Of a stretch of DNA of 64,000 nt, positions 1 to 48,370 are shown piece after piece; position 1 is the stretch's first letter; each line of letters begins with the position of its first letter. The position numbers and the translations under genes were made by a program. The DNA is taken from the NCBI RefSeq assembly GCF_000143415.4, contig NW_003314415.1, forward strand, positions 136,772 to 200,771, written 5' to 3'. The stretch is from Selaginella moellendorffii (Eukaryota > Plantae > Lycopodiophyta). The notes beneath the pieces were generated by a model that was not told the origin of the DNA, ran no database searches, and saw nothing but the letters and a program-made list of their open reading frames with translations.

Positions 1-1183
1 CCGTGATCTTGTCCATCAGCCTGTGAAAGTGTCCAGTGTTTGGAAAGATGAAAAAGCCCACCGTCGCCTCCTCCAAGAACAAGAGCTCCACGTCCTTGCC
101 GGCGTTCCTCATCCCCTCCACGTACTGGAGCTGCCAGTCCTTGATCATATCCAGCCCCGCCACCGCCACCAGCGAAGGTGGCAGCACCACGCCCTCGAGG
201 CTGCGGGAGCTCGGCCCGAATATGTTGCACGCCGGATGATCCCTGTCCGCCCCGGCCGGAAGAAAGGACTGCCAGTAGAAATCCCTGTCCTTGATCGTCA
301 CAAAGTACTGCCCGTCGAATCTCAGCTCCGACTGCGTCCTCCGGTTGCCACCAAACATTGGTATAATCAGAATGTGTCCGGCCACACGTAACGGGCCGAG
401 CTCCGCCCCCGACTCCGCTGCTCGGACTCCGACATGGTGGACAATGTTTCCACCGTTGCTGTCCCCGACCAAAAAGCACCGCCCGAGATCGGCAGTCCGT
501 GGAAGCCAGGCATGCGCGACGCCGCGCAAGACTTGGACTTTGAGCCAGGTGAGCGCTGCGTAGCAGTCGTTGTAGGCGGCCGGGTACTTGTGCTCGGGAG
601 CTCGCCGGTAGTTAACCGAGATGACTACCGCCTGGCACAGCCGGGCCAGCTGCTGGCATACCGTGTGGTAGACTGCACTGTTAGCGGACATGTGCACGAA
701 GCTGCCGCCGTGGAAATAGAAGAAAATTGGCGTACCGTGCGTCGTCGAGCTTGCGTTGTTGTTGTGGCTGGCGCGGGGGATAAAAATTCGCGACCAGATG
801 CCGCTGGTGCGGTCGATGGTCACGTCCATGAAGGTCACGGGGTCGTCTTCGCGCTCCACGCTGCTCACGGGGACTTTGCGGTCGAGGAATTCGTCCAGGT
901 TGCGGTTGAAGGAGCCGTCGGAATTGCGGGTGAGGTTGTAAGCTAGCTTGAGGTTGGAGATGAGGACCCAGGTGTTGAGCGGCACAACTTCCTGAGCAAA
1001 AAACGCAAGGGGTCAGCCATTATTTCTCCCTGATCTCTGCTCTCTAGGTTGCTGGAATGAAGAAAGAATCGAGGAGCAAAGGAAAAAGAGGATTTTTATG
1101 TCTGGAGAGTAGCCTAGCGATATAGGTACCTTGGATTCTTTGAGCTGCAATTCCTCGGCGCTGCTATCCTCCTCCGGTTCCAT
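1..1183 (-). CDS. GID1: Gibberellin receptor GID1 (2 exons; 3' end runs off the window)
   Basis: Exon 1 1183-1130 (MEPEEDSSAEELQLKESK), GT-AG intron, exon 2 from 991: EVVPLNTWVLISNLKLAYNLTRNSDGSFNRNLDEFLDRKVP...FYFHGGSF...GDSNGGN...EATVGFFIFPNTGHFHRLMDKIT. GID1-type N-terminal lid, and V in place of the catalytic His. Missed by the ORF track. Confidence 0.95.
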
Positions 1184-3367
1184 ATGCTCGCTTTGAAGCA
1201 GCATGAATGCCCGAGCGCTCGGAATTCCGGCCCTCTGTGGATCGCCTTCTAAATGTAGGAATTGTGGAGCTCTTGGCGTTCGATGCTATTTCATCGAATC
1301 ACGTCAAAAAAGAGAAAGGGAAATAAAAACAGAAAAGACGCGGATAGAGTCGATAGATGCCGACAAATCCCTGCAAACGCCACCCACCACTTAGAGCTTC
1401 GCAAAATTCAACATCGAAAAGGAAGTGACCAGCAAGCACAAGCAAAGAGTGGCAAGAAAACAAGCCCAGGAAGAAGAAAGAAAAGATGCACAAGCAGCAG
1501 GGGGAGACCCTACAGAGGCGTGTCAAGAGCACTCACTAGATTTGGCGCTGAGGAGGCCCTCCTCGCCCGCACTGTGCCTGCGTCGCTGAGCCGAATTCGT
1601 TGGTCAGATCCCCGCAAAAACAAAACTTTAGGCCGTCTTCCGGAATCTCTCTCCCCGAAAAGGAGACTGGTTCCAAGCAAGAAACGTGTTGTGGCAGCCA
1701 ATTCCTGGAGGGAGGGGTATTAGTAATCCGTCGTATACTGCCGTATCCCGCGCTATCAATCCATTACATCATCGTTCCGTCCCCCACCTTCCCTGCTGCC
1801 GAAGTACACACGTCGTCTCCTGAGCTAGCTTTCAATGCCGTCTATCCCTGTCCGTGCTTATCTGCAGAGAGAGAAACGCTACCAAGCGCTGGAAGCAGCG
1901 CCTCTTCCTGCTGCTGCCGCTGCGGCTGCTGCTACTACCGCCTGTGGCCACCCTTGAAGCGCGCAACAAACGCTGAGCAAACCAAAAGGGACCTTCAAGA
2001 GTGGAACCCACGCCAACGACAAACATGCCGCCATTGGCCCTGTGCTGGCCTTTCTTGTCCGTATCGGGCGGAAATGAAGCCTCCTCCCGTCCCTTAAGCC
2101 CCCCTCTCGCTCTGGAGCTTCACTTGGCAGCATTGCGGAGCATGGAAAGTCCAGCCTGCTGCCTCGCCCATCCCCGTCTTTTATCTCAACCGGACGCTGC
2201 GAGCGCGAGGCAGCAACAAGGTCTGCATTGGATCTGGTCCAGAATCTAGTGGAGAAAAAGCCTTTTTTTTCCGCCTCCTGCGTACGTACCCGACGGCCCC
2301 CGGGCTCCAAAATAGTAGCCGTCGTGTTTGTTGTTGCCGCTACGCTAACACCACTTGTTAAGTCTTTTTTAGTCTCTCCAGATACTGCCAGTCCCGCCGA
2401 ATCACTCTGCCTGCTACTCTTGTCACCACGTCGTTTGTTTTTCTAAGGCGTGTAAGCCAAGTCAAAACCCGTGCCCTCCATCCAAAGATCGTTGTGGATT
2501 GGATTGTTGGAACCCGGCCAAATTCTAAGCTGCCCAGCTGTGAGCCACCTACACCTCCCTACTTTGCTGTGCCGAAGGAAGTGCTTTTGACCCGATAGCT
2601 TTGGGCTTGGACCCCAGTACCAACTAGCCAGGCGTCGACGAGGCTTGCTTGTTATGACGGCCACCACCTCAAAAACAAATGCCGGAAAAAGCCATGACGA
2701 CCGCGCGCTGCTGCCGACTTAAATAATCCATCCCGGCCTGCCTGCCTACCTGCAACTCTGCTTGTTTTATCCAACTCCTTGCCACGGTGTGGGTAAATTG
2801 TAATGGCGACTGCAAAAGGAGAGACTTTGTTTAAGCGCGTAGAGTAAAAAGTCTTTGCTAACCTTTCGGATTAGCGAAGAGCCCAGGCAAGCGCATATCA
2901 TGGTCTGATATGGTTTACCGTAAACTAAAGCGTTGTCGGTCGCTGTTGGTGTCCCTTGGTAAATTTTCTTTTTGCCGGGGCGACCTTTCCCGGCTCGAGC
3001 TCGCCACGAAGGAGCTGTTGTTTTGTTTCTAGTCCCCTTGGAACAGATTGGCGGTGCGCTACACGTCAAGCCCGACTTGCAATCAAGGATAGTAACATGC
3101 TACTGAAAGACAAGGCCCTTGTGGACGCTTGCTGCTCTATGAAAATACATGCCTACCTGCAGCCCCACATCGCTCACTATAGCCATTTTCTCCAGTGGAT
3201 TGGCTCCGATCGGATAACTCCCGACTGAAACTCCCAGCCTGCGGAACCAATGCAAAGAAACAAACGCTGTGAGAGCGAGGGTGAAAACAAAATGGCAGAA
3301 GAACAACAGACAAAACGGGGAAAGGTTCCATGATTGTTACATGGACCAAAATCTCATTTTCTCGTAC

Positions 3368-3370
<3 letters not shown>

Positions 3371-3404
<34 letters not shown>
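3371..3404. repeat. (TG)n microsatellite
   Basis: Perfect TG dinucleotide run. Confidence 0.95.
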
Positions 3405-3406
<2 letters not shown>

Positions 3407-5151
3407 AAGTGCCACGTTCCATCTTGGTTGTCCATCGCTTTGCTTCAACTTCACTCCAAGGAAAAAAGCTCGCTTCGTTCCCTCTTTAAATAAAAAAGAA
3501 AAAGGAAAAAGGGAAAAAAGAGAAAAAGGATCGTCACATTCTGTCAGGAAGCCACAGTCATGCTTGAATCATCATCACCCTCAATTCCGTTAAACAAGTC
3601 CCACCCGGACCTCTTTCTTTTCTTACTAAAAGAGAATGAGAAGAAGCAAGGAAGGAAGAGCATTTGGCATTGACAGACACAAACAAAAAAAAGCCCGACT
3701 TTGACACCATCAAGCAGGCCCGGACTTTACCTCAGAATCTGCGCCATTCTTCTTCTTCTCGTCCTCCCCAACGTGACAAGCAAGCACAGTGGTCAAAAGC
3801 TCACGCCCGGTCCTTTTCCTCTGCAAAGATCTACACCTAACTCGGCAGCATTAGAGCGGCCCAGCGCGCTATCAAACAAGACGATCGCGACCGAGAAAGC
3901 CCTGGCCCTAAAATTTAAAAAATTTAGGGTTCTTGAGCTGCCACGTGGATTGGAACTTAAGCACGTTTTGGTCGAATGTTTAATCTGGACTGGCCGATAG
4001 TGTGGCTTGATTTTTCTTTTCTCGTGCACTTAAGAGCGCTTCTTCATTCATAGTACGTTTTTCAAGGCTCGATTTATGTCCTGTTGGCCTGCCTGTGGTT
4101 TTAAAGCTCTTTCTTCTTTTTCTTCTTGTCTTGCTGCCCGTTTTATCCCCTGCTTTTCTCGGTTTTGGGACTTTGCTTTTGAGCTCTAACGCTAGCGGCC
4201 ACCTCGACTTATTCTCCCGAGGAAAAGTATTCCCGAGAACTAGCTGACAAGTTCACATCTCGAAGAATAACAGGTAAAACCATCGTAACAGCCATGGCTG
4301 AACTCAGCGTTTGTATCTTTCGCGACAGACGGCAGAGCTCGTTAGAAAAATCAAAACAGGAAAGAAATTTGTGTAAGCTCTTCACTTTTTTTCCTTTTGA
4401 GTTGTTTCACAAATTTCATACTGTTTGTTGAGATAAGACCTGTGGTCCCGGAAATCTTGATGGAACCTTTTCGTGTTGTAGCACTTGTATTTCTGGACCT
4501 GGAAGCTTTGGATGCTCAAGACGTACCACTTTACTGTTTCGCGCTCTTCTCTCTTCCTTGACTTGCTGCTCTTGTTTTGCAGCCGGAAACTCGGGATAGA
4601 GATGGGAAATCACCAATCGTGTAAGTGTATTTTTCTTCAATCCGTCCTCTGAGGTCTAGTTTCTCACGTTCTTTTGTGTACGTGATTTCTAGTTGGTGAT
4701 CTTAACGTTGGTTGTGGTGATGATTCAGCTTTTGATCGATCAAAGCGTGTTTTCAATTGTCACAGTCTCCGCGCTAAGGAGCCGAAAGTTACGAACAATT
4801 TGTGCAGCTATGGTGGAGAGCCAAATACCAAAGTTTGGTTGGAGTTTTCTTTGCAATAAGCACAGGCTCGCAAGGTTCTAGTTGATTTTCTTTAGATTTT
4901 TGGTCTGACTGCAACAATCATTGATCGATTCCAAGCTTAGTATCATACATTTGCTTCTTATAATTGCTCCCATGCCTTAATACACCAAATCAAGTTGCTG
5001 GAGAGCAGGAATCCTGTTTTTCGCTTCCACGTAAGTTCGTCTCTGATTGCTCTGCCTTTCCAGAGAATTCTATCTTGCTGGAAAACATTCCACAAACACT
5101 TTCAAAAGCAAGACTCGAGCTTCTTTCATTACAATATTGCTATTATCTGAA

Positions 5152-6174
5152 TCATCCGCCGGTAACGTCAGTCTCAGTGACCGAAACACCAGTGTACGTA
5201 CCAGTCTGGGGGAAACTAAAGCTTTCGCCTGTGTCAAGCTTGACAACCATGACACCCGAGTATGGCACGTTGATCTTACCAGAGTAAGTTACTGCCTGGA
5301 TGTTAACTGACGCCCCCGGTGCCAGCGTATTTCCCTCGGATCACTCGAGGTTTTTGGTGCCGGAATGCTCAACCGTGTTGGTGGACTGCTCGCTCTCTTG
5401 CCACTGATAAGAGCTCTCGGTCTTGAAAATGTCGAGGATGCTGGCATTCACAGTGACGGTTTGGGAAGTGGTGAGGCCTTCGGCCTGAGACCACGAGTAG
5501 GAGATGGTCATATCTTTACTTCCATCGATCTTCCACTGAACAGGAACTTCACTGTTGTTGCTGCATTTCAGGGTGTCCAGTGTCTCTGGAACGATGCTTC
5601 CCAATGCAGAGATGTTGTAGTAGCGTACGTCTTGGAGCTGGCAAGAGACCAGCGGCAGGAGAAACGCAAAGCCCCGTGCGTTTAGGTCGTCACCGGCACG
5701 GATGTCGGCTCCCACCAGGATCCCGGAGTAGACATTGATCACCGTGGCGCTTCCACCTTGGTATCCATGCTGGAAAGTATTGCCGAGGCTTGTGGTAAAC
5801 ATGATAGCACTGGCGCGATCACCTGGTCGTCCAAAAGCACGAGCCAAGGTATAATGCATACCAAGAAGAGGTGATAGAGCAAGCTTACCAACGTGATCCC
5901 ATTCGCCAAGCCAGAGGGACATGGACGTGATGAGCTCCCCGGGCTGGAAAGTGTAGGTGGACGAGCTTCCAGCGGGGCTGCCATAGAGGTGGCATTGATT
6001 GTCCGTCTCACCCGTCTGCCACAACTTGACAGCTTTGGTTCTGTTACCATAGTCCCACACTTGGATCTGGCGGATGACCTTCCCGCTAGTCCAGGCTTCA
6101 AGCTGATAGTCAGTGCCACCCGAGGTGTTTCCCACAACTTGGACGGTGCCAATGACGGGGCTGGAGAGTGTCAT
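5152..6174 (-). pseudogene. Jacalin-like lectin + aerolysin-type beta-pore-forming protein (natterin/Dln1-like), copy A; in-frame TGA at 5341-5343
   Basis: MTLSSPVIGTVQVVGNTSGG...YTFQPGELITSMSLW...GFAFL lectin part, then Ser/Thr-rich SYSWSQ..TVTVNASI..YQW. The frame continues past TGA as SEGNTLAPGASVNIQAVTYSGKINVPYSGVM...TGTYTGVSVT..GG*. One 66-nt intron. Confidence 0.85.
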
Positions 6175-6516
6175 GAGCAAAAGGATGAATGCAAGGGAGT
6201 TCTAGGAGAGATGCTTTGGTGATGATGATCTAGAATGGACCTAGATTTATATTGTCCTCGACTTGGTGCTTGAGTCAACCATCGCTGGATTGTTGATCGT
6301 ACTCCATGTGCGCGTGATTTTCGATCTCTGAATGAAAGAGTTTCTTACGCTGTTGCTGTTCAACGTAATCTGCATCGACAACAGGTCCTGATTATCACAG
6401 AATAAACAAACACCAAAAAACTACGGTCGTGATGAACGCGCTGCACTTGAACGTAAAAAATCTGCCAGCAAGATGCAACAAGATTAAAAACATTTCTCGT
6501 TTTAATCATGTGAAAT

Positions 6517-6902
6517 TTTTCTAAGAGGTTTATATGTGTTTGTAAACGTCAGGATGCAGATTTGAGTCCTCGAGAACTGATATTTAGTCCTAATTAACAC
6601 AGAATAAACAAATCTCGAAAGCAATCTAGACAGTACATACAGGTTTCTCTTGGTGAACGCGCTGCATTACAAAATTCTGACTACGAGCTGCATCCTGATT
6701 TTGTTGACGTTAAGAGGTTTATCAGTGCTCCGCCGTTGGATCGGGGGCATCCGACGTACCGTTTAACATTTGGTTATGAACAAGAACAAGACATTGGAGC
6801 CTCCAAAAAATATAGCGATTTGTTCAAACGTCAACAAAATCGATGTCGTGGTCAAATCTCCATCCTGACGTTTACATTAACACATATAAACCTCTTAGAA
6901 AA
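6517..6902. repeat. Fold-back/MITE-like segment with ~50-bp inverted ends
   Basis: 6517-6565 TTTTCTAAGAGGTTTATATGTGTT-TGTAAACGTCAGGATGCAGATTTGA is the near-perfect reverse complement of 6852-6902. Confidence 0.75.
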
Positions 6903-6958
6903 CTTATAGGAAATATAATGTGATAATAAGTTCAACCTTTTAATGTTTTTGTTCCGCT

Positions 6959-8400
6959 ATGGTTCTTGTGGGAGCGGCGCTCGAGGCTTTGGATTTCAAG
7001 ACGCGGCGACCAAGGTACCACTTTGCTCAGATTTGCGAAGCGATTGCGTGTTTTTTTTACCACTTCACTTGCTTTGTAAGTTGTAGTTGGCTTGGCTCTT
7101 GGGTCATCCCACTTTGGTAGCTGATGCTTTAAAGGCATCGCCGGCGATAGAGATCAAACAGTCCAGCACTCCGCGTTTCGTGTGTGTTTTGCAAAAGGAA
7201 TTCGCGACCGCTATTCCAGCGCTTGTGGATGTAAGATCGATTTGGATACAAGCTTGGTTGCAACTCACTCATGTTCTTCCCTCTCTCTTTTTGTCTTGCA
7301 GTTTGTTGGCACAGATGATGCAACAACTTGTGTGGGAGTGCAAATCCGGACTGTAAGGATGCTCCAAGTTGGTGTGTTACGCTTCTGATGGCTTTGCGGA
7401 ACAAGCATCGGGCATTTGGACTTTGCAGGCTGCGTGAAAGAAGGCCTCGTCCAAATGCTTTCTTCGCTTTTTCCGGACAAGGACACCATCCTCGAGGTGT
7501 TGTTCTTGATTTTTTTTTCTTTCTATTTCCCCTGGTTTGTGAGTTGATTTCTACTGCTTGCCTTCTACACAGGTCCATATGGCTGGTGCTTACGATGACT
7601 CCATCGAGATGGGGCTCCGAGAAGATGAGATGGGACACTCTTGGCCTCTGTGCCTAGAACTTGTCGAGGAGTTGCAAGCTCTGCTTACAAGCTGGAAATC
7701 CGGACGCTTTGCATTCTCCGGCATAACACTGTCACAAGCGATGGGGGTTATCCTTGTCCTGCTGTGAGAGGCTTCGCGGTGAGCAAAGGTTCCATAGCTT
7801 TTTCGTTCTCTCTCTCTCTTTCTTTTATCAGTTCTCCTGGTTTCGCAGATCGAAACAAAATCTGGACGCTGTTTTCCAGCGAGCTTTTCAGCTGACGCCA
7901 GGGGTCCGGACGAAATCATTCGAGCACTCTTGATGCTGGCGGGGCCGGCAACCAGGCTCCGCCTCCCGTATGACACCGAGTCGGACACTTTCTCGATCAA
8001 ACCATTCCAGTGGTATCAAGTCTTCTTTCACCACGGTTTCCATCTTTTCTTCATGGTTTCTTTCTACCTTTCCAGGAGCCGAGGATGGAAAATGCTCGCA
8101 GCGCAGTCGCTAGCTCTGTCTGATGCCGAGCTACTCCAGACTCGATCAACGTCTCCACACGCAGAGAGCCCGAGCTTCGTCACCTCCATCAGAAGGTAGT
8201 GCAAGAGCTCCTTTCCTTTACATGCATCTTTACCACCTTTCAGGATGGACACTTATATTTACAACCATCCCGACTGGGAACACGCATTTCCAAACCGAGA
8301 GAGCCGAAGGTTAGTAAGAGATCCTGGAACTGGGAGATGGATGCGAGCGGAAGACCCAAACTCAAGAAGAGTTGCGAGCACAGCCAAAGCTTTATGGGAG
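6959..8400 (+). pseudogene. NTAN1: NTAN1 pseudogene (duplicate of 15409-16910)
   Basis: Colinear with the intact copy, but has a 14-nt deletion in the TTCVG exon, an AG>GG acceptor change, a 1-nt deletion near 7685 and a lost stop codon. Confidence 0.85.
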
Positions 8401-8455
8401 CTCTCGCTTTGAAAACCACAGGCTCTTCGTCACCACATCCCGAGAGAGAGCTTTG

Positions 8456-8795
8456 CTACGACAGATTCTCAAGCGAGGCAATCCACGAAGAGAGTCTCGC
8501 GTTTACTTGCACTGGTATCTCGTCGTGAGGACAGTGTCCGGCTTGGAGCTTCATGAGCGTTGCGTCGTTGTAAAGAGCTTGGATCTTGTCAGCTTTAGAA
8601 GACGGGGCCAGTGGATCCGACTCTCCCCACAGTACTAGCAGTGGACAATCCAAATCTCGCAAAAGTTTCTCCAGGGATAAATCAGATGGCTGGAACAAGA
8701 AGCGAGAGATCATCCTGTTCCAAGAAAAAAAAGCCATTCTTTTCGTAGTTTTTCATTTCTTTCCCTTCTACGAACCTGTAAAACACCACTGCTGA
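8456..8795 (-). pseudogene. 3' fragment of the alpha/beta hydrolase gene (duplication remnant)
   Basis: Near-identical to 16966-17308 (PLLVLWGESDPLAP...AGHCPHDE); truncated at the duplication junction. Confidence 0.85.
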
Positions 8796-8904
8796 GCAGC
8801 AAGGAAGGAACCAACAAAAAAAAGCCTGACTTTGACACCATCAAGCAAACTTGGACTTTACCTCAGAATCTGTGGCATTTTTCTTCTTCTCACCCGCCTC
8901 AACA

Positions 8905-11198
8905 AAGGAGCTGGGTGTTGGAAATGTAATTATTGTGGAAAAATGTATTGCGGTCCGCTAAAATGAATTAAAACGCATCTTGCTAAATTTTTTGGGTATA
9001 ACATTGAAGCATGTAATGCTTTAAATGTTCCTCTTCATGTTCAGAATCAAACTCGCTAAATGTTTGTGGATTAATATTAACATAGTGGGATTTTAATAGA
9101 CATTAAATTAGTTTCAATCTAGACCTTTCATATAATTTATGCCCTTTTGTCTTTACCTTTTACAACAAATCTACAGAATAGGCATTTTGATAGAGCATCT
9201 GCTTCTAGAGTTGGCACACAAAGTGCTAGTCAATCTTAGCCTATGAGTGCTTTTATAGGCTAGGGATCATTTGTTAGTCGAAAGCGAATGTAAGATGGCA
9301 ACATTGGAGAAATGCTTGATGATGTAAAAAACATGAATTTAGATGATGTGATATTAAAGTTCATTTTCTTGAATGCCATACTATTTAATGTTGTGAAAAG
9401 CCTATATTTTCGTGCAATGATCACAACCACTTGTAATGCCGGACATAATGCTGCATCGAGGATTCTTGGTTACAATAAAGTTTGTATTACTCAGTTCACT
9501 TGTCACTATACTCTAATCAAAGAGAAGTTAATTCCCTTTCATGATGGATGGACTCAATTTAAATGTACAATAGTGACTGATGGATGGTTTGATATAAAAA
9601 AACAGATCATTCATAAATTTCATAGTTACCTCTATCTATGGCTCAATATTTTGGCAGGGTGTTGACACCAAAGGGAAGAAAAGATTGGTCTTTGGCTTTG
9701 GGAGCAATTTAGACCCATTATTTTGGATGTTGGTATTGAAAATGTTCTTCAAGTCATTATTGATAGTATTTTGAATTGTGTATTAATGGGGGAACATATG
9801 AGAGAAGAATTCCCCTTTATCTTACACAATCAATGCATGTGCTGTGTTTTGGACTTGTTATTGGAGGATATTGGGAAGTTTGATTGAGTGTCTAAAATTA
9901 TAAATGACTGTGAGAAGATCGTGAAGTTCATAATTGAGAAGCTAATATTACTTGCTTTATTTTGAAAGTTTTGCTCTAGAGAACTCATGAAGCCTGCAAA
10001 CACTTGATTCGCTTACATCTTTTTTATAGTCAGCTAGCTCCAACATGAAAATGTTTTGCCATGCTTTCGACGATTCAAAGTGAGTGTAGAATTTGAATTG
10101 TCGAAATGGTATAACACAAAGGATGCTAAGAATGTTCGTACAACAACTTTCAATGATGAATTTTAGAAGAACACTTTTACTTTATTGGTCATGGTAACTC
10201 TTATTTTGAAGGTGTTATGTCTTGTAGATCGTAAGGGTGCAATAACAAGATTAATTTATGAAGCAATGTATTGTATAATTAAAGGATTAGAGCTTATAGC
10301 TCAAATGGCAAGCTTGATGCGGATAAAATTAATGCAATTAAGTGTATTTTGATTGAAGATTAACATAGACAAAAAGCTCGATGGTTTATGATGCATAGCT
10401 ATATGCACAATGCTACACATGCTTTGAATCTTTCATACCTTGAGCAAGACTTAAATGCTGAGGTAAGAAGCGATTGAATAGATTATTTATCACTCTATTG
10501 CTGTAAGGACACTCAATTGGAAGAAAAGTTAGATAAGTAATTCAATATGTTTCGACAAGGAAATGGAAGAGCTATCAATTAAGATTTGCTGAAGAGCAAA
10601 GCAAAAAGGAAATTCCTAGTGTCTTGGTGAGAATCCTATGGATATGAGATACATGAGCTCAGGAAGTTAGCATTTTGTGTGTTGAGCCAAAGAGTGTGCT
10701 CTTTTCCATGTGAGCAAAATTGGAATAGTTGGAACTTGATCCAAACCAAATAATATAATCACGTACTTCCAGAGAACTTGAAAAAGTTAGTTTATGTACA
10801 TAATAACACAAGAGTGGTGGATCGTATTGAAAGTGAAGGAATAAAATTCTTAAAAGATCAATCTCGACACAATTACAATCAAACCACAATGGATAAAGAT
10901 TGTAGAGTGAATCTCTTAGTATAGAAGATTTAGCCGAAGAAAATTTTCCAAATGAGGATGTGATTGTTAAAGTAGATGCCAGAGATGTTAAAGAACTTGC
11001 CGAAGATGTTGAAGAAGATAAGTAATAGTTGATTTGGTTTAATGCTTTGGTTTTCTTACTTTTATTAGTGTGGTTTTACTAAAAATGTTTTTTTTTAAAT
11101 AAAAAAATTTATGAACTGTTCTGCCGTTTAGCATTTTTACGGCCGGTCGATAACCACTGTTAACCAATCGGTCGGTCAATCAGTGTTCGGAACAATTG
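8905..11198 (+). mobile_element. Decayed hAT-family DNA transposon inserted in duplication unit 2
   Basis: AT-rich insert absent from unit 1. Broken frames show WKCNYCGK (BED-like zinc finger), CTIVTDGW, VGIENVLQVI and DLLLEDIGK (DUF659-type) motifs and C-terminal dimerisation-like remnants; many stops. Confidence 0.8.
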
Positions 11199-39619: not shown

Positions 39620-41318
39620 TTTGGCCCGGGGGAAACAAAACCCTAGCGCTAGGGCTATGGGCAGATATTCCGTCAGCTTGACGGAATGTCTTTCCCGACA
39701 TCTACTCCATACATTTTAAATATATATATTAGTTTTAATATTTTATGTATTAAATTGAGGAATCCAAAAACGAGGATTTGAAGAAACATCAGGTGGAGCA
39801 ACAATATATTCGTTGCCAGCACAAAGTCCTGTTAAGTGCTTCCATGACAGAAAAAAGAAAGATTCTTATTCATAAGAACAAGCAAAGGTGGAAGAACGAA
39901 GAAGATAGACCGACTGTTTTTTTTTATTCTGGAGGGCTGAATGTTGTGGCAAACCTCAGGTCCTATTTGCTGCCGCACTTCCACTGAGTAGGCAGACCTC
40001 TTAGACAAAGCACGATTGGGAAAACAAATCAACTGGGTGGATGAGAGTTGTATTTGCTGGTATGGTCTCACTTGTATGAAGAATGATCTTTAAATATACC
40101 ATCCACCAAAAAAGATGAAAATAATAGAAAAATTGAGCTTCACATTTGTGCAACTTATGACCTCAAAATTCTTCTGTCTCATCTAAGGGCATTACAAAAC
40201 TTATATTCTTTCGAAGGGAAGCTGTGAAGATTTACAACAAAACACAGAAAACAAAGCAGCATATAAACTTGATCAAGATGCCATCAGACTAGGACAACAT
40301 CAACTCCAACAACACATACCACCTCTCGTAAGGTGGCTGTATGGACCATCACCTCGTAGTTAAGATGCAACTCCAAGCACGTCTTGAGATCAGTGGAATC
40401 TGAAAATGCTGTCCACCCAAACATGCACAGTGCGCCTCAAATCTGCTGTCCATGTTATCAGATAGCTTTTTGAAGCCCTGCGAAAGAACACAAACAAAGT
40501 TATAGAAAGCAAAACGAGAGCAATCTAACTTACTAAAACGCATGGTTTGCATGGTGTCAAAGCCGAGACAATACTTGTGGCCGACTTCCAGCTCAGGAAC
40601 TCCAAAACTCTCCAAATAGAGCTTCACGATCATGGGCGTGTGCTTCCAAATGCTGTATATTACTTCCAGGAATTAGACTTCAACATTGTATAATCACAAG
40701 TGTTTTTCAAGATTGAGGGACACAATAACCAAACGCTCCTACTCCTTGGAGTATGGAAACATACCCTTCACAACATTTCTCTGGGTCACCAAAACCCTTA
40801 CACAAAGCCTTGAAACAATCCTGAAGTAGTTTGCGAGGCCCAGTCAAATGATCTAAAATGCAGAAAATTAGATTCAGTATTAAAATCTGGGCTTTATGAA
40901 CATGGCCGCAGAAGAACTTATTTGTGTCATAAACACAAATGAGATGAAAACAATCATGAACAAAACTAGACTCAGCTTCTGGAAATTGCCCATTCCCCAC
41001 TAGAGCCAAAGCAAAAGTTATGCCAGACTCGGTACAAAGTCAGCTTGACAGTGGATACGACCCGTCACACAGTGCATATGGTTGCTTAAGAATTTAAAGC
41101 CTTGAGTCACTTAAAGCTACCTTGAAAACTGATTATAATTCACAGGTGTTTCTATGGAACATGATACAATCCACTCAAGACGTCTTTCACTTTTAGTGTG
41201 AGCAGACATTCCGTCAACATGGGGAAATGAGCTCTTTGCCCTCCGTCAGTCGGTGGTTTCGGGGAGTGGATTTAAAAAGAACTGTGTAGAGATGTCCGTT
41301 CCCCCGCGTGTGTGAGGA

Positions 41319-41869
41319 ATGGAGGTTTGTCCGCTGCTTGCGCTTCGAATCAGGCTTGTGATCCAGAAGCTCAAACGCGCCACGCTCAGGCTTAAAGGTA
41401 GATCGTCCATTGTTCTTTGGATCCCACAGATTTAACTTCTTATCAGGAAAGAAGAAGAGGAAGAGCTCCACAGAGCAGAGAATCCAGCCGGCTAGAAGAA
41501 CACTCAAGGAAATCAAGAGAGAATATGGATTCGAGGTCTGCAAATCAACTGGCAATAGAGATGCTAGCTTTGTTTTGGATCTTACTTGAGGGCCTCTCTC
41601 TTATTGACAGAATTCTCCAGCAGCAAAGGCCAGAGCTGCTCTAGCAGAGCGCCAGGAGAAACTCAAGGTAAAGTGGATCTTAGATCTTACACTCTTTTTT
41701 AGACTAGGAAGAGAGATTCCAGCCCAGATTCCCACTATCTCACTTTTAAACAACGCTCCAGAGGGTAGAGGACAAGGCCCAAACATTACAGAGCAATGCG
41801 GAGAACTTCGCCGGGCTGACGGGAGAGCTGAAGGAGACTGTGGCCTCTCGCAAATGGTGGCAATATTGA
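41319..41869 (+). CDS. Tomosyn-derived soluble R-SNARE mini-protein 1 (~110 aa, 4 exons; start uncertain)
   Basis: MEVCPLLALRIRLVIQKLKRATLRLK/GKKKRKSSTEQRIQPARRTLKEIKREYGFE/NSPAAKARAALAERQEKLK/RVEDKAQTLQSNAENFAGLTGELKETVASRKWWQY*; GT-AG introns in phase. Confidence 0.72.
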
Positions 41870-42964
41870 TCGTTCGTTCCTTAGCTCTTTGTCAAACAAA
41901 CAAAAAGACTATGCTCGACCGATTTTGATGATCGAGTAGTTCGCGTAGTTCTTTCTGGAACCCACCTCGCTAAAGCAGAGAGAGGAAGGGGCGTGAACGC
42001 GCGCTTGTAAATCTCGTTGATCGATTCGCCCGGAAACCGGGTCCGGGGGTTGGGGTGGCTGAAGAAGGTTAAAAACCAGCGGAGAGCGGAAGAAGCGCCG
42101 ATGTTTGCTCGTAGGTGGCTGTATGCTCGTAATTAAGATGCAACTCCAAGCACGTCTTGAGAATCTAGAGATCAGGGTGGAATAGCCCTGTGAAAGTAAG
42201 CAAAGTTATAAAAAGAAAAACGAGAGCAATCCAACTTACTAGTAGAGAAAAACGCATGGTGCCAAGACAAAACTTGTGGCCGACTACTCCAAAACTCTCC
42301 AAATAGGGCATCACGATCATGGGCGTGTGCTTCCAAATGCTGTATATTACTTCCAGGAACTAGACTGCAACATTGTATAATCACACGTGTCACCAAAACC
42401 CCCACACAAAGGCTTGAAACAATCCTGAAGTAGTTTGCGAAGTAGTATCTGAAATGCAGAAGATTAGATTCAACATGAAAATCTGGGGTTTATGAACATG
42501 GCCGCAGAAGAGCTTATTTGTGTCATAACACAAATGAGATGTAAACAATCATGAAGACTCAGCTTCTGAAAATTGCCCATTCCCCTCTAGAGCCAGAGCA
42601 AAAGTTATGTCCTCGTCTTACACATTTATATATATATACAAAGTCAGCTCTACAGTGGATACGACCACATCACACTGTGCATATGGTTGCTTAAAAATTT
42701 AAAGCCTCGAGTCACATTCAATCATACAAGCAATTGGTTAAAGCTACCATGAAAACTGATTATAATTCACCAGGTGTTTCTATGGAACATGATACAATCC
42801 ACTCATCATCTTTCACTTTCAGTGTGAGCAGATATTCCGTCAACATGACGGATGTGCTTCTGCCCTCCGTCAGTCAGTGGTTTCGCGGAGTGAATATGCG
42901 GTGTGGATTTAAAAAAGAACTGTGTAGAGATGTCCGTCGTCTGTCTCCCTCGCGTGTGTGAGGA

Positions 42965-43508
42965 ATGGAGGTTTGTCCGCTGCTTGCGCTTCGAATCAGG
43001 CTTGTGATCCAGAAGCTCAAACGCGCCGCGCTCAGGCTTAAAGGTAGATTGTTTTTTGGATCCCAGAGATTTAGCTGCTTATCAGGAAAGAAGAAGAGGA
43101 AAAGCTCCACAGAGCAGAGAATTCAGCCGGCTAGAAGAACACCCAAGGAAATCAAGAGAGAATATGGATTCGAGGTCTGCAAATCAACTGGCAATAGAGA
43201 TGCTAGCTTTGTTTTGGATCTTACTTGAGGGCCTCTCTCTTATTGACAGGATTCTCCAGCAGCAAAGGCCAGAGCTGCTCTAGCAGAGCGCCAGGAGAAA
43301 CTCAAGGTAAAGTGGATCTTAGATCTTACACTCTTTTTTAGACTAGGAAGAGAGATTCCGGCCCAGATTCCCACTATCTCACTTTTAAACAACGCTCCAG
43401 AGGGTAGAGGACAAGGCCCAAGCACTACACAGCAATTCGGAGAACTTCGCCGCGACAGCGAGAGAGCTGGAGAAGATGATGGCCTCTCGCAAATGGTGGC
43501 AAGTTTAG
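42965..43508 (+). CDS. Tomosyn-derived soluble R-SNARE mini-protein 2 (~110 aa, 4 exons; start uncertain)
   Basis: Same exon structure as copy 1; last exon RVEDKAQALHSNSENFAATARELEKMMASRKWWQV*. Confidence 0.72.
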
Positions 43509-43677
43509 AGAGATTGCTCGTTCGTTCGTTAGCTCTTCGTCAAACAAACAAAAGAACTATGCTCGATCGATTTTGATGATCGAGTAGTTCGCGTAGTTCT
43601 TTCAAGCAATGAGAGGGAGGGACGTGGACGCGTGCTTGTAAATCTCGTTGATCGATTCGAAAGTGACAAGATCGGCT

Positions 43678-46600
43678 TTAGATTTCCCACCATTTTCTGG
43701 ACTCCATTTTCTTCGCGAGCTCTTCAGCCATTGATGCAAAGTTCTCTGCGTTGTCTTGCATTTCTTCCGTCCTCCGGTTTATGTTCTGTTACCAACGTTA
43801 GGCTCTTTGGATTGCAGAAAGATCATGCTCACCTGCAAGCGCTCCTGCCGTTCCATCAATCGATCTCTGGCGTGTGCCGCGGCGCTGCTTGCCTCCTAAA
43901 CCCCATTCATGCAAAATCGAGTGAGTGAATGAGCTGAAAGAAACTTCTCTGGTAGTTAGTTACCGCGGATCTCTTGTGACCATAGGCTGCCTTGATCTCT
44001 TCGGCTGTTCGCATTGTCGGCGTTTTGCTTGATTGTTTAGTCTCCGTTGAGCCACCTTCAAAAAGCATATTTCTCTCCTCGTCCTCGTCCCCTTTGATAG
44101 AAGCTTTCTTCTTGCCTGCTAAAAGCAAACGATTGTAAGATTGATTCTTGTACTAGAAAGAAGTACCTTTGTTGAAGCTACTTCTCAACTTTCTCATCAC
44201 ACCGCCCTTTTTTACCGAGCCTTCCGAAGGCGATGGCGATGGCGACTTCAAGTCGTCGTCACCGAGATCGATGTCATCTGCAGAGCCATAGAGTGAGAGA
44301 GAAAGAGAGAATTGGAACCTTGACCTTACCAATATCTAACTCAGTTTCTTTGTCAGGACTGTCGGTCTGCCGCTCGGCATTTCGATCATTATGGCGTTCG
44401 TTGGAAGAAGACTCTGAACTCGCAGCCGCCTTCAGCCTTTTCACTATACTAGTTCCATGGGAGGCGACCGGTGACACTTGCTTCGAGAAAAGCTTGGGGA
44501 GCTCAAGGGCCGTACGCTCCCCGCCCACAGCATTGCCTAGAGAATGCTTTAATTCTTTCATAACTCCGCCAAAAAGATCCTGGATCTGACTTTGCTGTAG
44601 AACGAAAGACATTTACATTTACATTTACATCAGTCAGTAAGCCAAGAGAAAAAACAAGCTCTCACCTTCTTCTTGGCTGCTTGAACACTCGCTTTAATGG
44701 CTGCTTCTGTTGCTGTGGCAACATCTTTATCGTATAGTAGCGGGTAAGAGCCCGGTAACCTGTTCCAAATGTTTTAGCCATTAAAGAAACTTTCCACTAA
44801 CACACCTCATGTCGTTTTCATCTGCAACGACTGACATAAACAAAACCTCCTGATCTGCATCAACCTGTCAAAAGACCATTCAGTATGGAGATGATGGAAA
44901 ATGATAGTCGACATACTGCAGTTACACGTCCATTGGATGCTACAGCAAAAGTTCTGAAGAAGCTTGGACTGCTGCCAAATTCCCAACGTAAAGACTCACT
45001 TAGCGAGGTTAATTTGATAACCTCCAACGCTGGTAACGACCTGCTGGCACAAAGAACATTAAAACAATGCATTACAACCCTGGCAACGTTACCGGATTTC
45101 AATATCACCGGTATCATATAGAAGAAGAAGACCGGAGCCGTGTATTCCGCTATCAAATACCGATGCCGCGCAGCAAGGCTTTTCAAGTCTTTCTTTTCTA
45201 ATTGTTGTTCGCATTCCCTGAAACAAAGCATTTGGAACAAAACCTTTGAATTCTTTAGAATAACGAACCTGAAGAACAGATGAAATAGAATACACGCGCA
45301 ATGAATCTTCAGAGCATAATAGTACGAGGTTGTCAGATCCTGTCCAGTCGTCGTCCTGTTTCACATCCTCCTCTATTTCTTCGTTCCCTTCGGCAGGTTC
45401 AATATGGCTACCTGAGCTGTCAGTCTCAATAACAGCCATTACAACGGACCGTTTAGAGGCTTTCCTTGAAGGAGCTCGAGATACTGATTTTACTGACGAT
45501 CCTGATGGATCTGATTAAGAGGACATACAATTCAGCATCCAGCCAGCTTTTGAAAAAAGGGAGACAGGCGTACCGAGAACATGTAGAGAAATCGCAACGG
45601 AAGGATTATTAGGACGACCAGAGCCAATAGTCTTCCCGCTGCTGCCATCAATTGCAGCAATACACGCATCCTTCAGTAACACAAGTACAATAGTGTCTTG
45701 TTTGAACGATTTTGGGTCGCGTGCTGGAAGACTTATAAAACAAGACGAGACAATTCCTGAGGGACTCCCACATTTCCCATGGAAACGAACCACGCAAGCT
45801 TCGATATCGAACAAGGTAACCTGTTTCAAAAAGCCGATCAGTCGTAAAAACAATAAATGGTTGTGCATACCAATCCATTGTCATCGCCAATTGCAATACA
45901 ACGACAGTCGGTTCTGATAGTTAAGCTTCTGATTGGTGCTGTGTGGAGGTTTAGAACAGCAAAACACTGAAACCCAGCAGAATACTCTATTTCTCTTTCT
46001 GCAGGCGGAAGGTGATTCTGTAAGCTTTGTAACGCAAAAACAAATATTACTTGTCGATGGCTCGTTCTTGCTGATAAAATGGCACGTCCCTTCCCCCGAT
46101 TCGCCTTGCATTGTATATACAAAAACCTGCGCGTGGTGAAATTCATTTCCATTGGGTAATTCTCCAAGAAAAACTTACAAGACCAGCCTCGTCACCAGCT
46201 GCTAGCAGCCCAACCGTTGGACAGAAGTCAATAGCACATGTGGAGGCTAATTCCGATCCTACCAGCTCCTGTACAATGGTTTTCAGCGTTTTGGAGTTAC
46301 ACAAATCATTCGCTTACTCTATTATTCACCGACGCCAAAAAATAGAGACATGGTGTTGAAGCGTCCCAAACGTTGATCAGACCATTTTCATGACCAGTTA
46401 TGTAGAGACAGGGTGGCGACCTTCTGTCAACAGTAGTAGAGCTGAAGTTTCCGCCACTGACATGCCATCTCATTCCTGATGGAAACGCAGGAGGCACGTA
46501 ACCCTTCATTAAGCGTGGAATCTGATCCATAAAAAGATTAGGCATACATCATAAAGCAAGAAGAACGAGCCTACCTTCAGTATAATACTCGCAACTATAC

Positions 46601-48370
46601 TTTGATCTGGAATGGCCAACAGTCTCGCACACGTGACTGTAGAAAACGTCAAAGGAAGCTGGAAGGGAACGGGTTGAGCAGGAGGCTTCTCAGCTTTTAT
46701 AGAGTCGTAGATGTTGGCTTCCTCATACACATCCAAAGAACCAGGTGATGAAAGCACCAACATCGCTCCGTTCCCGATACTCGGGCCACTAGGCAATATA
46801 ATCACGTCCGCAAAAGGTCCACGAAGTGGGAGTTGCATTTGACAAGTAGGATCTGTTACAGGTAAGACCTGCAAGAAAGGAAGATAAGAAAGATGCAGCA
46901 GGCACAAAATGTAAAGACAAACCGTCACAACTTCCGCCATTCCCATTTCCTGTCCTCCAAACACGTAAAGGTAACCACTAGGCCCCTTGTCACTCTTGAC
47001 AGAAGTAGACCACCTCATCACCACGACCGGCATTCGAAATTCCTCCGAAGATAAAATGATCTTGAGAACTGGTGAGCTCGAAACGTCTGGTTTTTCTGCT
47101 TTTCCCTTGGGATTGACAGGGATGTTCCACAACCAGATATCACCATCTGTGTAGCCGCAAGCGAGTAGCGTGCCAGACGGGCATGCCCAGCACGCACAGC
47201 ACGGTTCCTTCTCTTCCTCGTCACTACCTGAAGATTTCCCCCCAGAAAGTTTTCTCTGCTGATCTTCGGTTCCTCCGCGGATGGCAAGGACTTGAGCTTC
47301 ATGAAGTCCCCACAATACAATAACACCATTCCCATAGACAATAACAACCCTGGAAAAAGAAAAATCAGGACGATATCAGTCACAGAAACAACCAGAAACC
47401 ACTAGTTTTTTTTTCATTTCTCTTGCCTGCTATGAACAGCATCGGGTTGAGGAAGAATGCTCACCACCGACGGTGCACTTGAGTCGTCCGTATCTATCAA
47501 TCCACCTGCAATCGAATAGATAATAAAGAACTGCTAAAACATTTTCGCTAGAAACGTACTTAATGTCAAATGGGCAGGAACTGTGTATTGCATCTGGACA
47601 AAACAACGATCCTCGTTGTTGAAATGGAGTACAGAAACCTGCCCGGTTTCATCTCCAACGTACCTGAAAGAACATATAAACAACACCAAGTTAACACAAC
47701 ATGAGATACCAGACAAAAAACTCATACATAAATGCTGTTGCCTGAATAACTGCGAACGCACTGATGTCAGCTTCCCACGTTTTAGACGAGACAAGCTCCT
47801 TTGTACTCAAGTCCCAAACCTGTCCAAATACCAACGAAGATCTCTCTCAAGAACAGCAAGAAAGGTAACGAAGAAAATCCAAAGCTACCTCGATTTCGTT
47901 GCGAGTTGTGACATGGATCAATCGTCCTTCATTGTTAACGAACTGTGAAAAGAGACATGGCTAAACAACACACTCAAATAAACTACCTTACCTCGAGATA
48001 TTTACAAGGCGCATTCGCGGGCGATTTGAAAAGAACTTCAACTCCTTCACGGCCAAAGATTTTGATCCGTCCATCCCTGTGCCAAATAAAATCCGAGAAG
48101 ACTAACGAAAGAGATCGCTTGCATGCTGACAAACCTGGAGGCAATTGCCAATAAACGCTGGCCGGGCTCATACGCGAGGACAGAGGCCGAGGCAGGAATC
48201 CCGTGATGAACAGTCAGTCTCAGATCCACATGCGTGGGCTTGAGACTATTCACTGATTTCGGGGACGATGCCTGTAATGCAGATTCCAATCAAACATTGC
48301 CTCGATCCGGGAGGCTGGAGCTTACCTCGCCGCTGCCACTGGATTTCTGCTGGATCACGCGCTTAAACAT
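43678..48370 (-). CDS. Tomosyn / lethal-giant-larvae-like WD40 protein with C-terminal R-SNARE motif, multi-exon
   Basis: [55 protein letters not shown]; C-terminus [11 protein letters not shown]/..[47 protein letters not shown]. Confidence 0.9.

Follow-up and report, generated by a model that had tools for sequence, protein, structure and literature searches.

Two small tandem genes on the plus strand of a 64,000-nucleotide stretch of the Selaginella moellendorffii genome (contig NW_003314415.1, positions 136,772 to 200,771; hereafter the window) are very probably genuine tail-only tomosyn-type R-SNARE genes. They are real, spliced, protein-coding tandem duplicates of one old gene, and comparison with the full-length tomosyn gene convergent with them indicates that their ancestor is derived from the four 3' exons of tomosyn. 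By homology with the tomosyn tail, their soluble products, referred to here as micro proteins, may act as anchorless SNARE decoys that inhibit fusion, a reading to which a probability of roughly 0.45 is given. The pair was described in an earlier note made from the DNA letters, and the anatomy given there is correct, well past chance expectation.

Each gene consists of four exons separated by GT-AG introns and has a coding length of 333 nt, which yields a protein of 110 aa. In copy 1 (41319-41869), exon 1 (41319-41397) carries the start codon and a basic amphipathic N-terminal helix, while exon 2 (41447-41535) encodes a polybasic KKKRK linker followed by an RT..EIK..YG box. Exon 3 (41611-41667) supplies SNARE layers -3 to +1, including the zero-layer Arg70, and exon 4 (41762-41869), the fast-evolving part of the gene, supplies layers +2 to +8, the terminal RKWWQY and the stop codon. 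The exons of copy 2 (42965-43508) lie at 42965-43043, 43086-43174, 43250-43306, where Arg70 is again encoded, and 43401-43508, which includes the stop codon and has one difference from the allele on the other haplotype.

Spliced transcripts of both genes were found in RNA contigs from four runs (X1, X3, X6 and X11) belonging to four studies, mapped on 40400-44600; these Logan contigs are unstranded. For copy 1, the joint of intron 1 occurs in X1 and X11, that of intron 2 in X1, X3 and X11, and that of intron 3 in X11. For copy 2, RNA contigs cover exon 2, the joint of intron 3 occurs in X6, and the 42-nt intron 1 appears in X3 both retained (contig 43015-43170) and spliced (a loose end at 43044). 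A further joint enters exon 3 of copy 2 at 43248 in X3, X6 and X11. The two copies have the same final 31 nt in exon 2, so the exon 2 side of this joint fits either gene and is unassignable. Read-through from copy 1 exon 2 to copy 2 exon 3 (41533 to 43248) was not accepted in view of the same identity and of the ability of Logan contigs to cross repeats, and a 34-nt loose end at 41302 in X3, absent from the window, was treated as an assembly chimera. More broadly, at least 16 RNA-labelled runs contain 0.18-0.36 of the sampled words of 41200-43700. The two plus-strand, four-exon open reading frames (ORFs) of about 110 aa reported in the earlier note are borne out by gene models, intron ends and RNA joints, the joints covering all three introns in copy 1. 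The note had also named upstream exons restoring a larger protein as grounds for abandoning its reading. They are ruled out by an in-frame TGA two codons 5' of each ATG (41313-41315 in copy 1, 42959-42961 in copy 2) and by the copy 1 leader, which is transcribed from at least 41234 and is unspliced.

The micro proteins have a mass of 12.8 kDa and an isoelectric point of about 10.6. Residues 1-45 hold 15 Lys/Arg and 2 acidic residues for a net charge of +13, and the remainder carries the motifs ERQEKL, NAENFA or NSENFA, and SRKWWQ, ending in RKWWQY or RKWWQV. Among solved structures, the best match is the rat tomosyn helix from its complex with syntaxin and SNAP25 (1URQ_A), with VAMP2 and VAMP4 next. 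In an alignment of 29 plant and algal tomosyn tails, the family-invariant residues Y53, R70, L74 and W107 are all kept, and R70, within ERQEKL, falls opposite the zero-layer Arg of both VAMP2 and rat tomosyn. From layer 0 to layer +8, the micro proteins have R-L-V-A-L-A/S-F-T/A-L where VAMP2 has R-L-L-A-L-A-F-A-L, and layers -1 to -3 are L, A and A, so that the canonical layers extend from -3 to +8. From this alignment, AlphaFold2 (AF2) predicts helices at 5-26, 46-52 and 59-104, with the predicted local distance difference test score above 90 over residues 61-100 and a low-confidence linker at 27-45; the polybasic linker (GKKKRK) is taken to be disordered. No transmembrane (TM) segment is seen, the top 19-residue Kyte-Doolittle (KD) mean being 0.91, and the 110-aa product has no Pfam match to WD40 propellers, so that hydropathy and Pfam scan uphold the earlier statement on both counts. 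A pleckstrin homology (PH) domain likewise has no Pfam match, and AF2 gives helices only.

Turning to the neighboring gene, the full-length tomosyn (about 1138 aa) occupies 43678-48370 on the minus strand, as located by tblastn of the tomosyn protein and the locus table, and its stop lies 169 nt from that of copy 2. Its last four introns are spliced in three or four of the RNA runs, and the joints fix the last four exons at 44167-44277, 43964-44115, 43833-43895 and 43678-43785. The micro genes and the tomosyn tail share intron phases 1/0/0 and equivalent intron positions, with junctions reading LK|GKKK vs NK|GKKK, YGFE| vs YGHKRSA| and EKLK| vs ERLQ|. The final exon measures 108 nt in all three genes. 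The correspondence of intron positions and phases claimed earlier therefore holds on RNA-fixed exons, while the boundary given as AGKKK does not, the RNA-backed junction reading GKKK. The copy 2 protein is 45% identical to the tomosyn tail over 75 aa (BLASTP, E 2e-16). When the DNA is compared, exon 4 alone can still be aligned (66% over 91 nt), and the proportions of synonymous and nonsynonymous differences (pS and pN) are about 0.75 and 0.41. Since synonymous sites are saturated, the split from tomosyn is old.

Whether the adjacent tomosyn was itself the donor is a separate matter. In a maximum-likelihood tree of 50 tails, built on only 80 columns, the Selaginella micro clade takes a basal position among the land-plant sequences, on a branch of 1.05 and away from the Selaginella tomosyn. 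This basal placement is probably long-branch attraction, and the separation in the tree leaves the adjacent gene as an economical, but not a proven, donor. Of the partial inverted duplication proposed in the earlier note, origin from the last four tomosyn exons stands, while the identity of the donor is beyond the reach of the tree; an inverted partial duplication of the adjacent gene is most simply consistent with the layout but is not demonstrated. The other haplotype (GL377585.1) has the same order of two micro genes followed by tomosyn on the opposite strand. Between these two micro genes, at 10870-11054 of the locus, is a piece of the tomosyn 3' end that lacks most of the last exon. It matches window 43667-43695 and 43793-43940 at 98-100% identity, and almost none of it is left in the window haplotype. 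The spacing between micro genes is 2398 bp on the other haplotype vs 1646 bp in the window. The fragment suggests that the unit of the later tandem duplication extended into the tomosyn 3' end. In the window, the tandem units comprise copy 1 with its upstream and downstream regions (40492-42028) and copy 2 with the same (42198-43659). They are defined by ten direct-repeat families (D1-D10) spaced by about 1.6-1.7 kb, corresponding to a unit of about 1.64 kb, with gap-free blocks 89-97% identical.

Across the two haplotypes, all four copies are free of stops and frameshifts and have intact splice sites. Their persistence despite saturated synonymous sites marks the genes as old and maintained. 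The ORFs have been kept up over the long term, at least one copy being maintained, and the earlier description of genes well diverged from their parent, with no stop or frameshift, is confirmed by the pS, the pN and the four intact copies. Copy 2 differs from its allele by 7 synonymous and 2 nonsynonymous changes, giving a ratio of nonsynonymous to synonymous rates (dN/dS) of about 0.08 (binomial p 6e-4 against the site ratio). Copy 1 behaves otherwise in its last exon. Exon 4 differs at 25/108 sites from the copy 1 allele and at 19/108 sites from copy 2, vs 10/218 and 5/211 intron sites in the same two comparisons, and nonsynonymous change exceeds intron change with p 1.6e-5 and 6e-5, respectively. 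The extra change is mostly nonsynonymous, lies in the final 80 nt, which encode layers +5 to +8 and what follows them, and is above even that of the flanks. Possible causes are diversifying selection or a complex mutational event, which the comparison does not separate. Exons 1-3 and the introns of the two copies are only about 2% diverged vs 5-11% for the flanks, which points to gene conversion between the copies across 41300-41800 as the probable explanation. Between the copy 1 alleles, a dense patch of equal-length substitutions covers 41815-41869 of the window and 10500-10560 of the GL377585.1 locus, for which selection, a templated patch or a micro-inversion may be responsible. The GL377585.1 allele of copy 1 also has a 3-codon extension, ending in WQVWRY, and reads ERHEKL, with His for Gln beside the zero-layer Arg.

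Tail-only tomosyn genes are also found in other plants. An exhaustive HMMER search of 1.84 billion representatives returned 71 matches, nearly all of them tomosyn C-termini and some of them short proteins. By cluster look-up, several of these short proteins belong to annotated genes, among them LOC7460359 of Populus (104 aa, found in five poplar taxa), LOC123448916 of barley (103 aa), LOC117838980 of Setaria (129 aa) and genes in Nepenthes and Lonicera. In P. trichocarpa (CM009305.2, locus 1130-10757), the small gene follows a tomosyn gene on the same strand at a distance of 725 bp, its exons match the last tomosyn exons, and a second poplar tail-only paralogue is 77% identical. A 281-aa protein predicted at the same locus seems to join a tomosyn tail to the exons of the small gene by read-through. 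The barley and Setaria genes, 63% identical, both lie just downstream of a Syja_N (SAC-domain phosphoinositide phosphatase) gene, and this common neighbor in barley and Setaria viridis (locus 10001-10772) implies a syntenic orthologue conserved across Panicoideae and Pooideae. S. moellendorffii itself has a third tail-only gene, SELMODRAFT_411303 (GL377579.1, locus 10001-10582; 153 aa), in which the N-terminal half of the SNARE motif is full length. A TM-grade segment occupies its residues 8-26 (KD 2.54) and, as an anchor, would be at the wrong end of the protein to support fusion; none of the other tail-only proteins compared has such a segment. SELMODRAFT_411303 adjoins a mitochondrial-carrier gene and not tomosyn. 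In the tree, the short forms group with the tomosyns of their own lineages and at least four origins are needed, so that on sequence grounds the tail-only genes of different plant lineages appear to have arisen independently. The earlier note knew of no described plant equivalent. That view needs revision, since poplar, barley, Setaria, Nepenthes and Lonicera have annotated, though uncharacterised, genes of this kind, and Selaginella has its third one.

The Selaginella pair is itself in public annotation. By word-indexed protein search, copy 1 is 100% identical to SELMODRAFT_431478, and the alleles on the other haplotype are SELMODRAFT_413339 and SELMODRAFT_413340. Isoform X1 (124 aa) of NCBI LOC9640929 is copy 2 with the 42-nt intron 1 kept in frame. 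Precomputed annotation assigns PF00957 to the alleles, UniProt names these proteins 'V-SNARE coiled-coil homology domain-containing protein', and their status in GenBank and UniProt is hypothetical. The genes are indeed invisible in a bacterial-style ORF list, as the earlier note observed, but they are not unannotated, having gene models in GenBank, UniProt and NCBI. A literature search combining tomosyn with Selaginella, Arabidopsis, amisyn and pollen, the gene identifiers, and microProtein with SNARE returned no description of tail-only tomosyn genes. The class is therefore undescribed in the literature reached, yet present in public annotation. Word-based protein search is too insensitive to delimit it, as such searches recovered S. 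moellendorffii copies only and a poplar query only poplar paralogues.

If the micro proteins are soluble decoys, the R-SNARE helix (residues 59-104) would take the place of VAMP72 in Qa/Qb/Qc acceptor complexes of the SYP1 and SNAP33 type. With no vesicle tether, the resulting complex would be fusion-incompetent, and the protein would serve as a small stoichiometric brake on secretion, comparable in plants to amisyn or to the tail of tomosyn. Its basic N-terminus could concentrate it on anionic membranes. Homology with the tomosyn tail makes the decoy the best-supported reading, in which Q-SNARE binding, inhibition and membrane association are proposed. Overexpression of the Arabidopsis tomosyn AtTMS blocks secretion in pollen, and CRISPR mutants are without obvious phenotype (review, PMC8964185).

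Several observations weigh against an inhibitory decoy. The micro proteins have a 5-residue deletion relative to every other tail, flanked by Gly54 and Pro59, with Glu56 at layer -4. Of the sixteen layers of a full SNARE motif (-7 to +8), layers -7 to -4 are disrupted, and N-terminal nucleation of the four-helix bundle may be poor as a result. The R-SNARE core described in the earlier note thus survives in its zero-layer Arg, N(A/S)ENFA and RKWW, but not at layer -4 and upstream. Given this loss, a decoy could act with either sign and with varying strength. Pfam Synaptobrevin (PF00957) matches residues 67-106 at 26.0 bits (E 8.4e-6) in copy 2 and 21.6 bits (E 1.9e-4) in copy 1, both under the gathering cut-off of 26.4 bits. 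Upstream ORFs (uORFs) are present in both leaders, one of 7 codons in copy 1 (41292-41315), its TGA being the in-frame stop before the main ATG, and one in copy 2 (42930-43007) that overlaps the main ATG out of frame. Copy 1 differs from its allele at 36/333 coding sites with a dN/dS of about 1.2, and the nonsynonymous deficit of copy 2 is not significant when judged by intron divergence (p 0.15). The KKKRK run also reads as a classical nuclear localisation signal (NLS). Lastly, neither the word-indexed protein search nor the exhaustive HMMER search found an orthologue of the pair outside S. moellendorffii.

The same observations can be arranged into other explanations. Disrupted N-terminal layers alongside canonical C-terminal ones would suit proteins that bind SNAREs without simply inhibiting them, either by pre-structuring or protecting the C-terminal half of Q-SNARE acceptors or by relieving tomosyn inhibition through competition, with a net effect on fusion that is neutral or positive. 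The genes adjoin tomosyn, their transcripts may overlap those of tomosyn, and the microProtein concept permits titration of a parent's partners (PMC5381583). Such a role nevertheless seems unlikely, the sole plant evidence on this type of helix, from AtTMS, favoring inhibition. One or both genes could instead be transcribed relics of a partial duplication that have no protein function, copy 1 being the likelier to be decaying or drifting. The dN/dS of copy 1 and its divergent exon 4, the uORFs, the sub-threshold Pfam scores and the want of a detected orthologue in other species by either search all fit this account, but four copies have kept ORFs, splice sites and family-invariant residues despite synonymous saturation, and the 7 synonymous vs 2 nonsynonymous differences of copy 2 speak for constraint. 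Moreover, the nonsynonymous excess in copy 1 exon 4 is five-fold above intron divergence and fits selection or complex mutation better than uniform decay, which makes loss of function quite unlikely.

Two further accounts leave the secretory pathway or the protein aside. A net charge of +13 over residues 1-45, the NLS-like run and a predicted amphipathic Arg/Leu helix at 5-26 that resembles an organelle presequence might direct the proteins to the nucleus or an organelle rather than to the plasma membrane or trans-Golgi network, where the coiled coil would pair with a non-SNARE partner. This is improbable given that the conserved part is exactly the R-SNARE core together with the RKWW end common to all plant tomosyns, and polybasic stretches are equally typical of anionic lipid binding. 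Alternatively, the main role might lie at the RNA level, with transcription of copy 2 modulating the convergent tomosyn through antisense pairing. Contigs of X3, X11 and X1 joined to tomosyn mRNA span 43265-43677, crossing copy 2 exon 4 and unspliced intron 3 to 43265, and the stops of the two genes are close. The tomosyn 3' untranslated region probably overlaps copy 2 in antisense, although the contigs are strandless and can merge two transcripts. Antisense control is nonetheless highly improbable as the principal function. Copy 1 has no such partner gene and yet is kept and spliced, and antisense pairing leaves the conservation of coding sequence unexplained while being compatible with a protein function in any case.

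Comparison with known systems places the micro proteins, on present analogies, best as an anchorless regulator of the tomosyn/amisyn R-SNARE type reduced to a microProtein. They share with the tail of tomosyn (STXBP5; AtTMS/TYN11 and TYN12) a homologous helix, intron positions and phases, the zero-layer Arg, the AENFA box, the RKWW end, which fits the K/R-W-W/Y terminus of the family, and the lack of an anchor. They differ from it in lacking two N-terminal WD40/Lgl propellers and in having, within 110 aa, a new basic N-terminal helix, the KKKRK linker and the deletion at layers -4 and upstream. Unlike fusogenic VAMPs, they have no C-terminal transmembrane anchor. Amisyn (STXBP6) is a small, soluble, tomosyn-related protein with one R-SNARE-like helix, no anchor and an N-terminal lipid-binding module, and it has been proposed as a VAMP competitor. 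The micro proteins resemble it in being small and soluble with a single anchorless R-SNARE-type helix, whereas amisyn is vertebrate-specific and its N-terminal module is a PH domain rather than a polybasic amphipathic segment. The two are analogous and not orthologous, and their origins are independent. At 12.8 kDa, with a single SNARE helix and an origin in the tomosyn tail, the micro proteins agree in size and relation with plant microProteins such as LITTLE ZIPPER and miP1a/b, which are smaller than 20 kDa, carry one interaction domain taken from a larger multidomain protein and are expected to trap partners (PMC5381583). Most of those described act on transcription factors. Among the Arabidopsis candidates in the miPFinder supplement are synaptobrevin microProteins derived from VAMP72, and none derived from tomosyn. 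The tail-only genes of poplar, barley, Setaria, Nepenthes and Lonicera and SELMODRAFT_411303 likewise encode 99-153 aa with a terminal tomosyn-type R-SNARE helix, and the poplar gene, like copy 2, adjoins its own tomosyn. In contrast to the pair, these genes retain a full-length N-terminal half of the motif and have no basic N-terminal helix.

Aside from the genes themselves, three stretches of the region have transcript features of their own. At window 43603, contigs of X1, X3 and X11 carry a 17-nt insertion that matches copy 1-type downstream sequence, from which it follows that the allele expressed in those samples is not the window haplotype. Between the two genes, a contig seen only in X6 covers 41920-42474 at a depth of about 55-84 and contains a 52-nt joint (42187-42238) with CT..AC ends. 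This joint indicates a minus-strand spliced transcript between copy 1 and copy 2, convergent with copy 1. No ORF was recognised in the contig, and the homologous stretch upstream of copy 1 is without coverage. At 42029-42071, contigs of three runs match over only about 40 nt and are flanked on either side by unrelated, G+C-rich sequence; the stretch is probably a short segment shared with an abundant RNA encoded elsewhere.

Full-length tomosyn is the one known negative regulator of plant exocytosis, and its knock-out in Arabidopsis has no obvious phenotype. If the decoy function proposed here is true, small soluble R-SNAREs derived from tomosyn would form a tunable layer over secretion, cell-wall deposition and possibly immunity-related exocytosis, and the microProtein concept would be widened from transcription factors to the membrane-fusion machinery. 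A bolder and rather doubtful extension is that land plants have repeatedly made tail-only 'micro-tomosyns' by partial duplication of tomosyn, as unrecognised dominant SNARE regulators that would include the Selaginella pair, the N-terminally anchored Selaginella form and the poplar and grass genes, with copy 1 under diversifying selection in layers +5 to +8. Those layers set final zippering and partner specificity, and the changes in copy 1 could perhaps retune which Q-SNARE complexes are blocked. The micro proteins are short enough for direct biochemical tests, and the repeated origin of tail-only genes beside their parent offers a natural experiment on microProtein birth. In plants, small soluble brakes on vesicle fusion may have arisen more than once.

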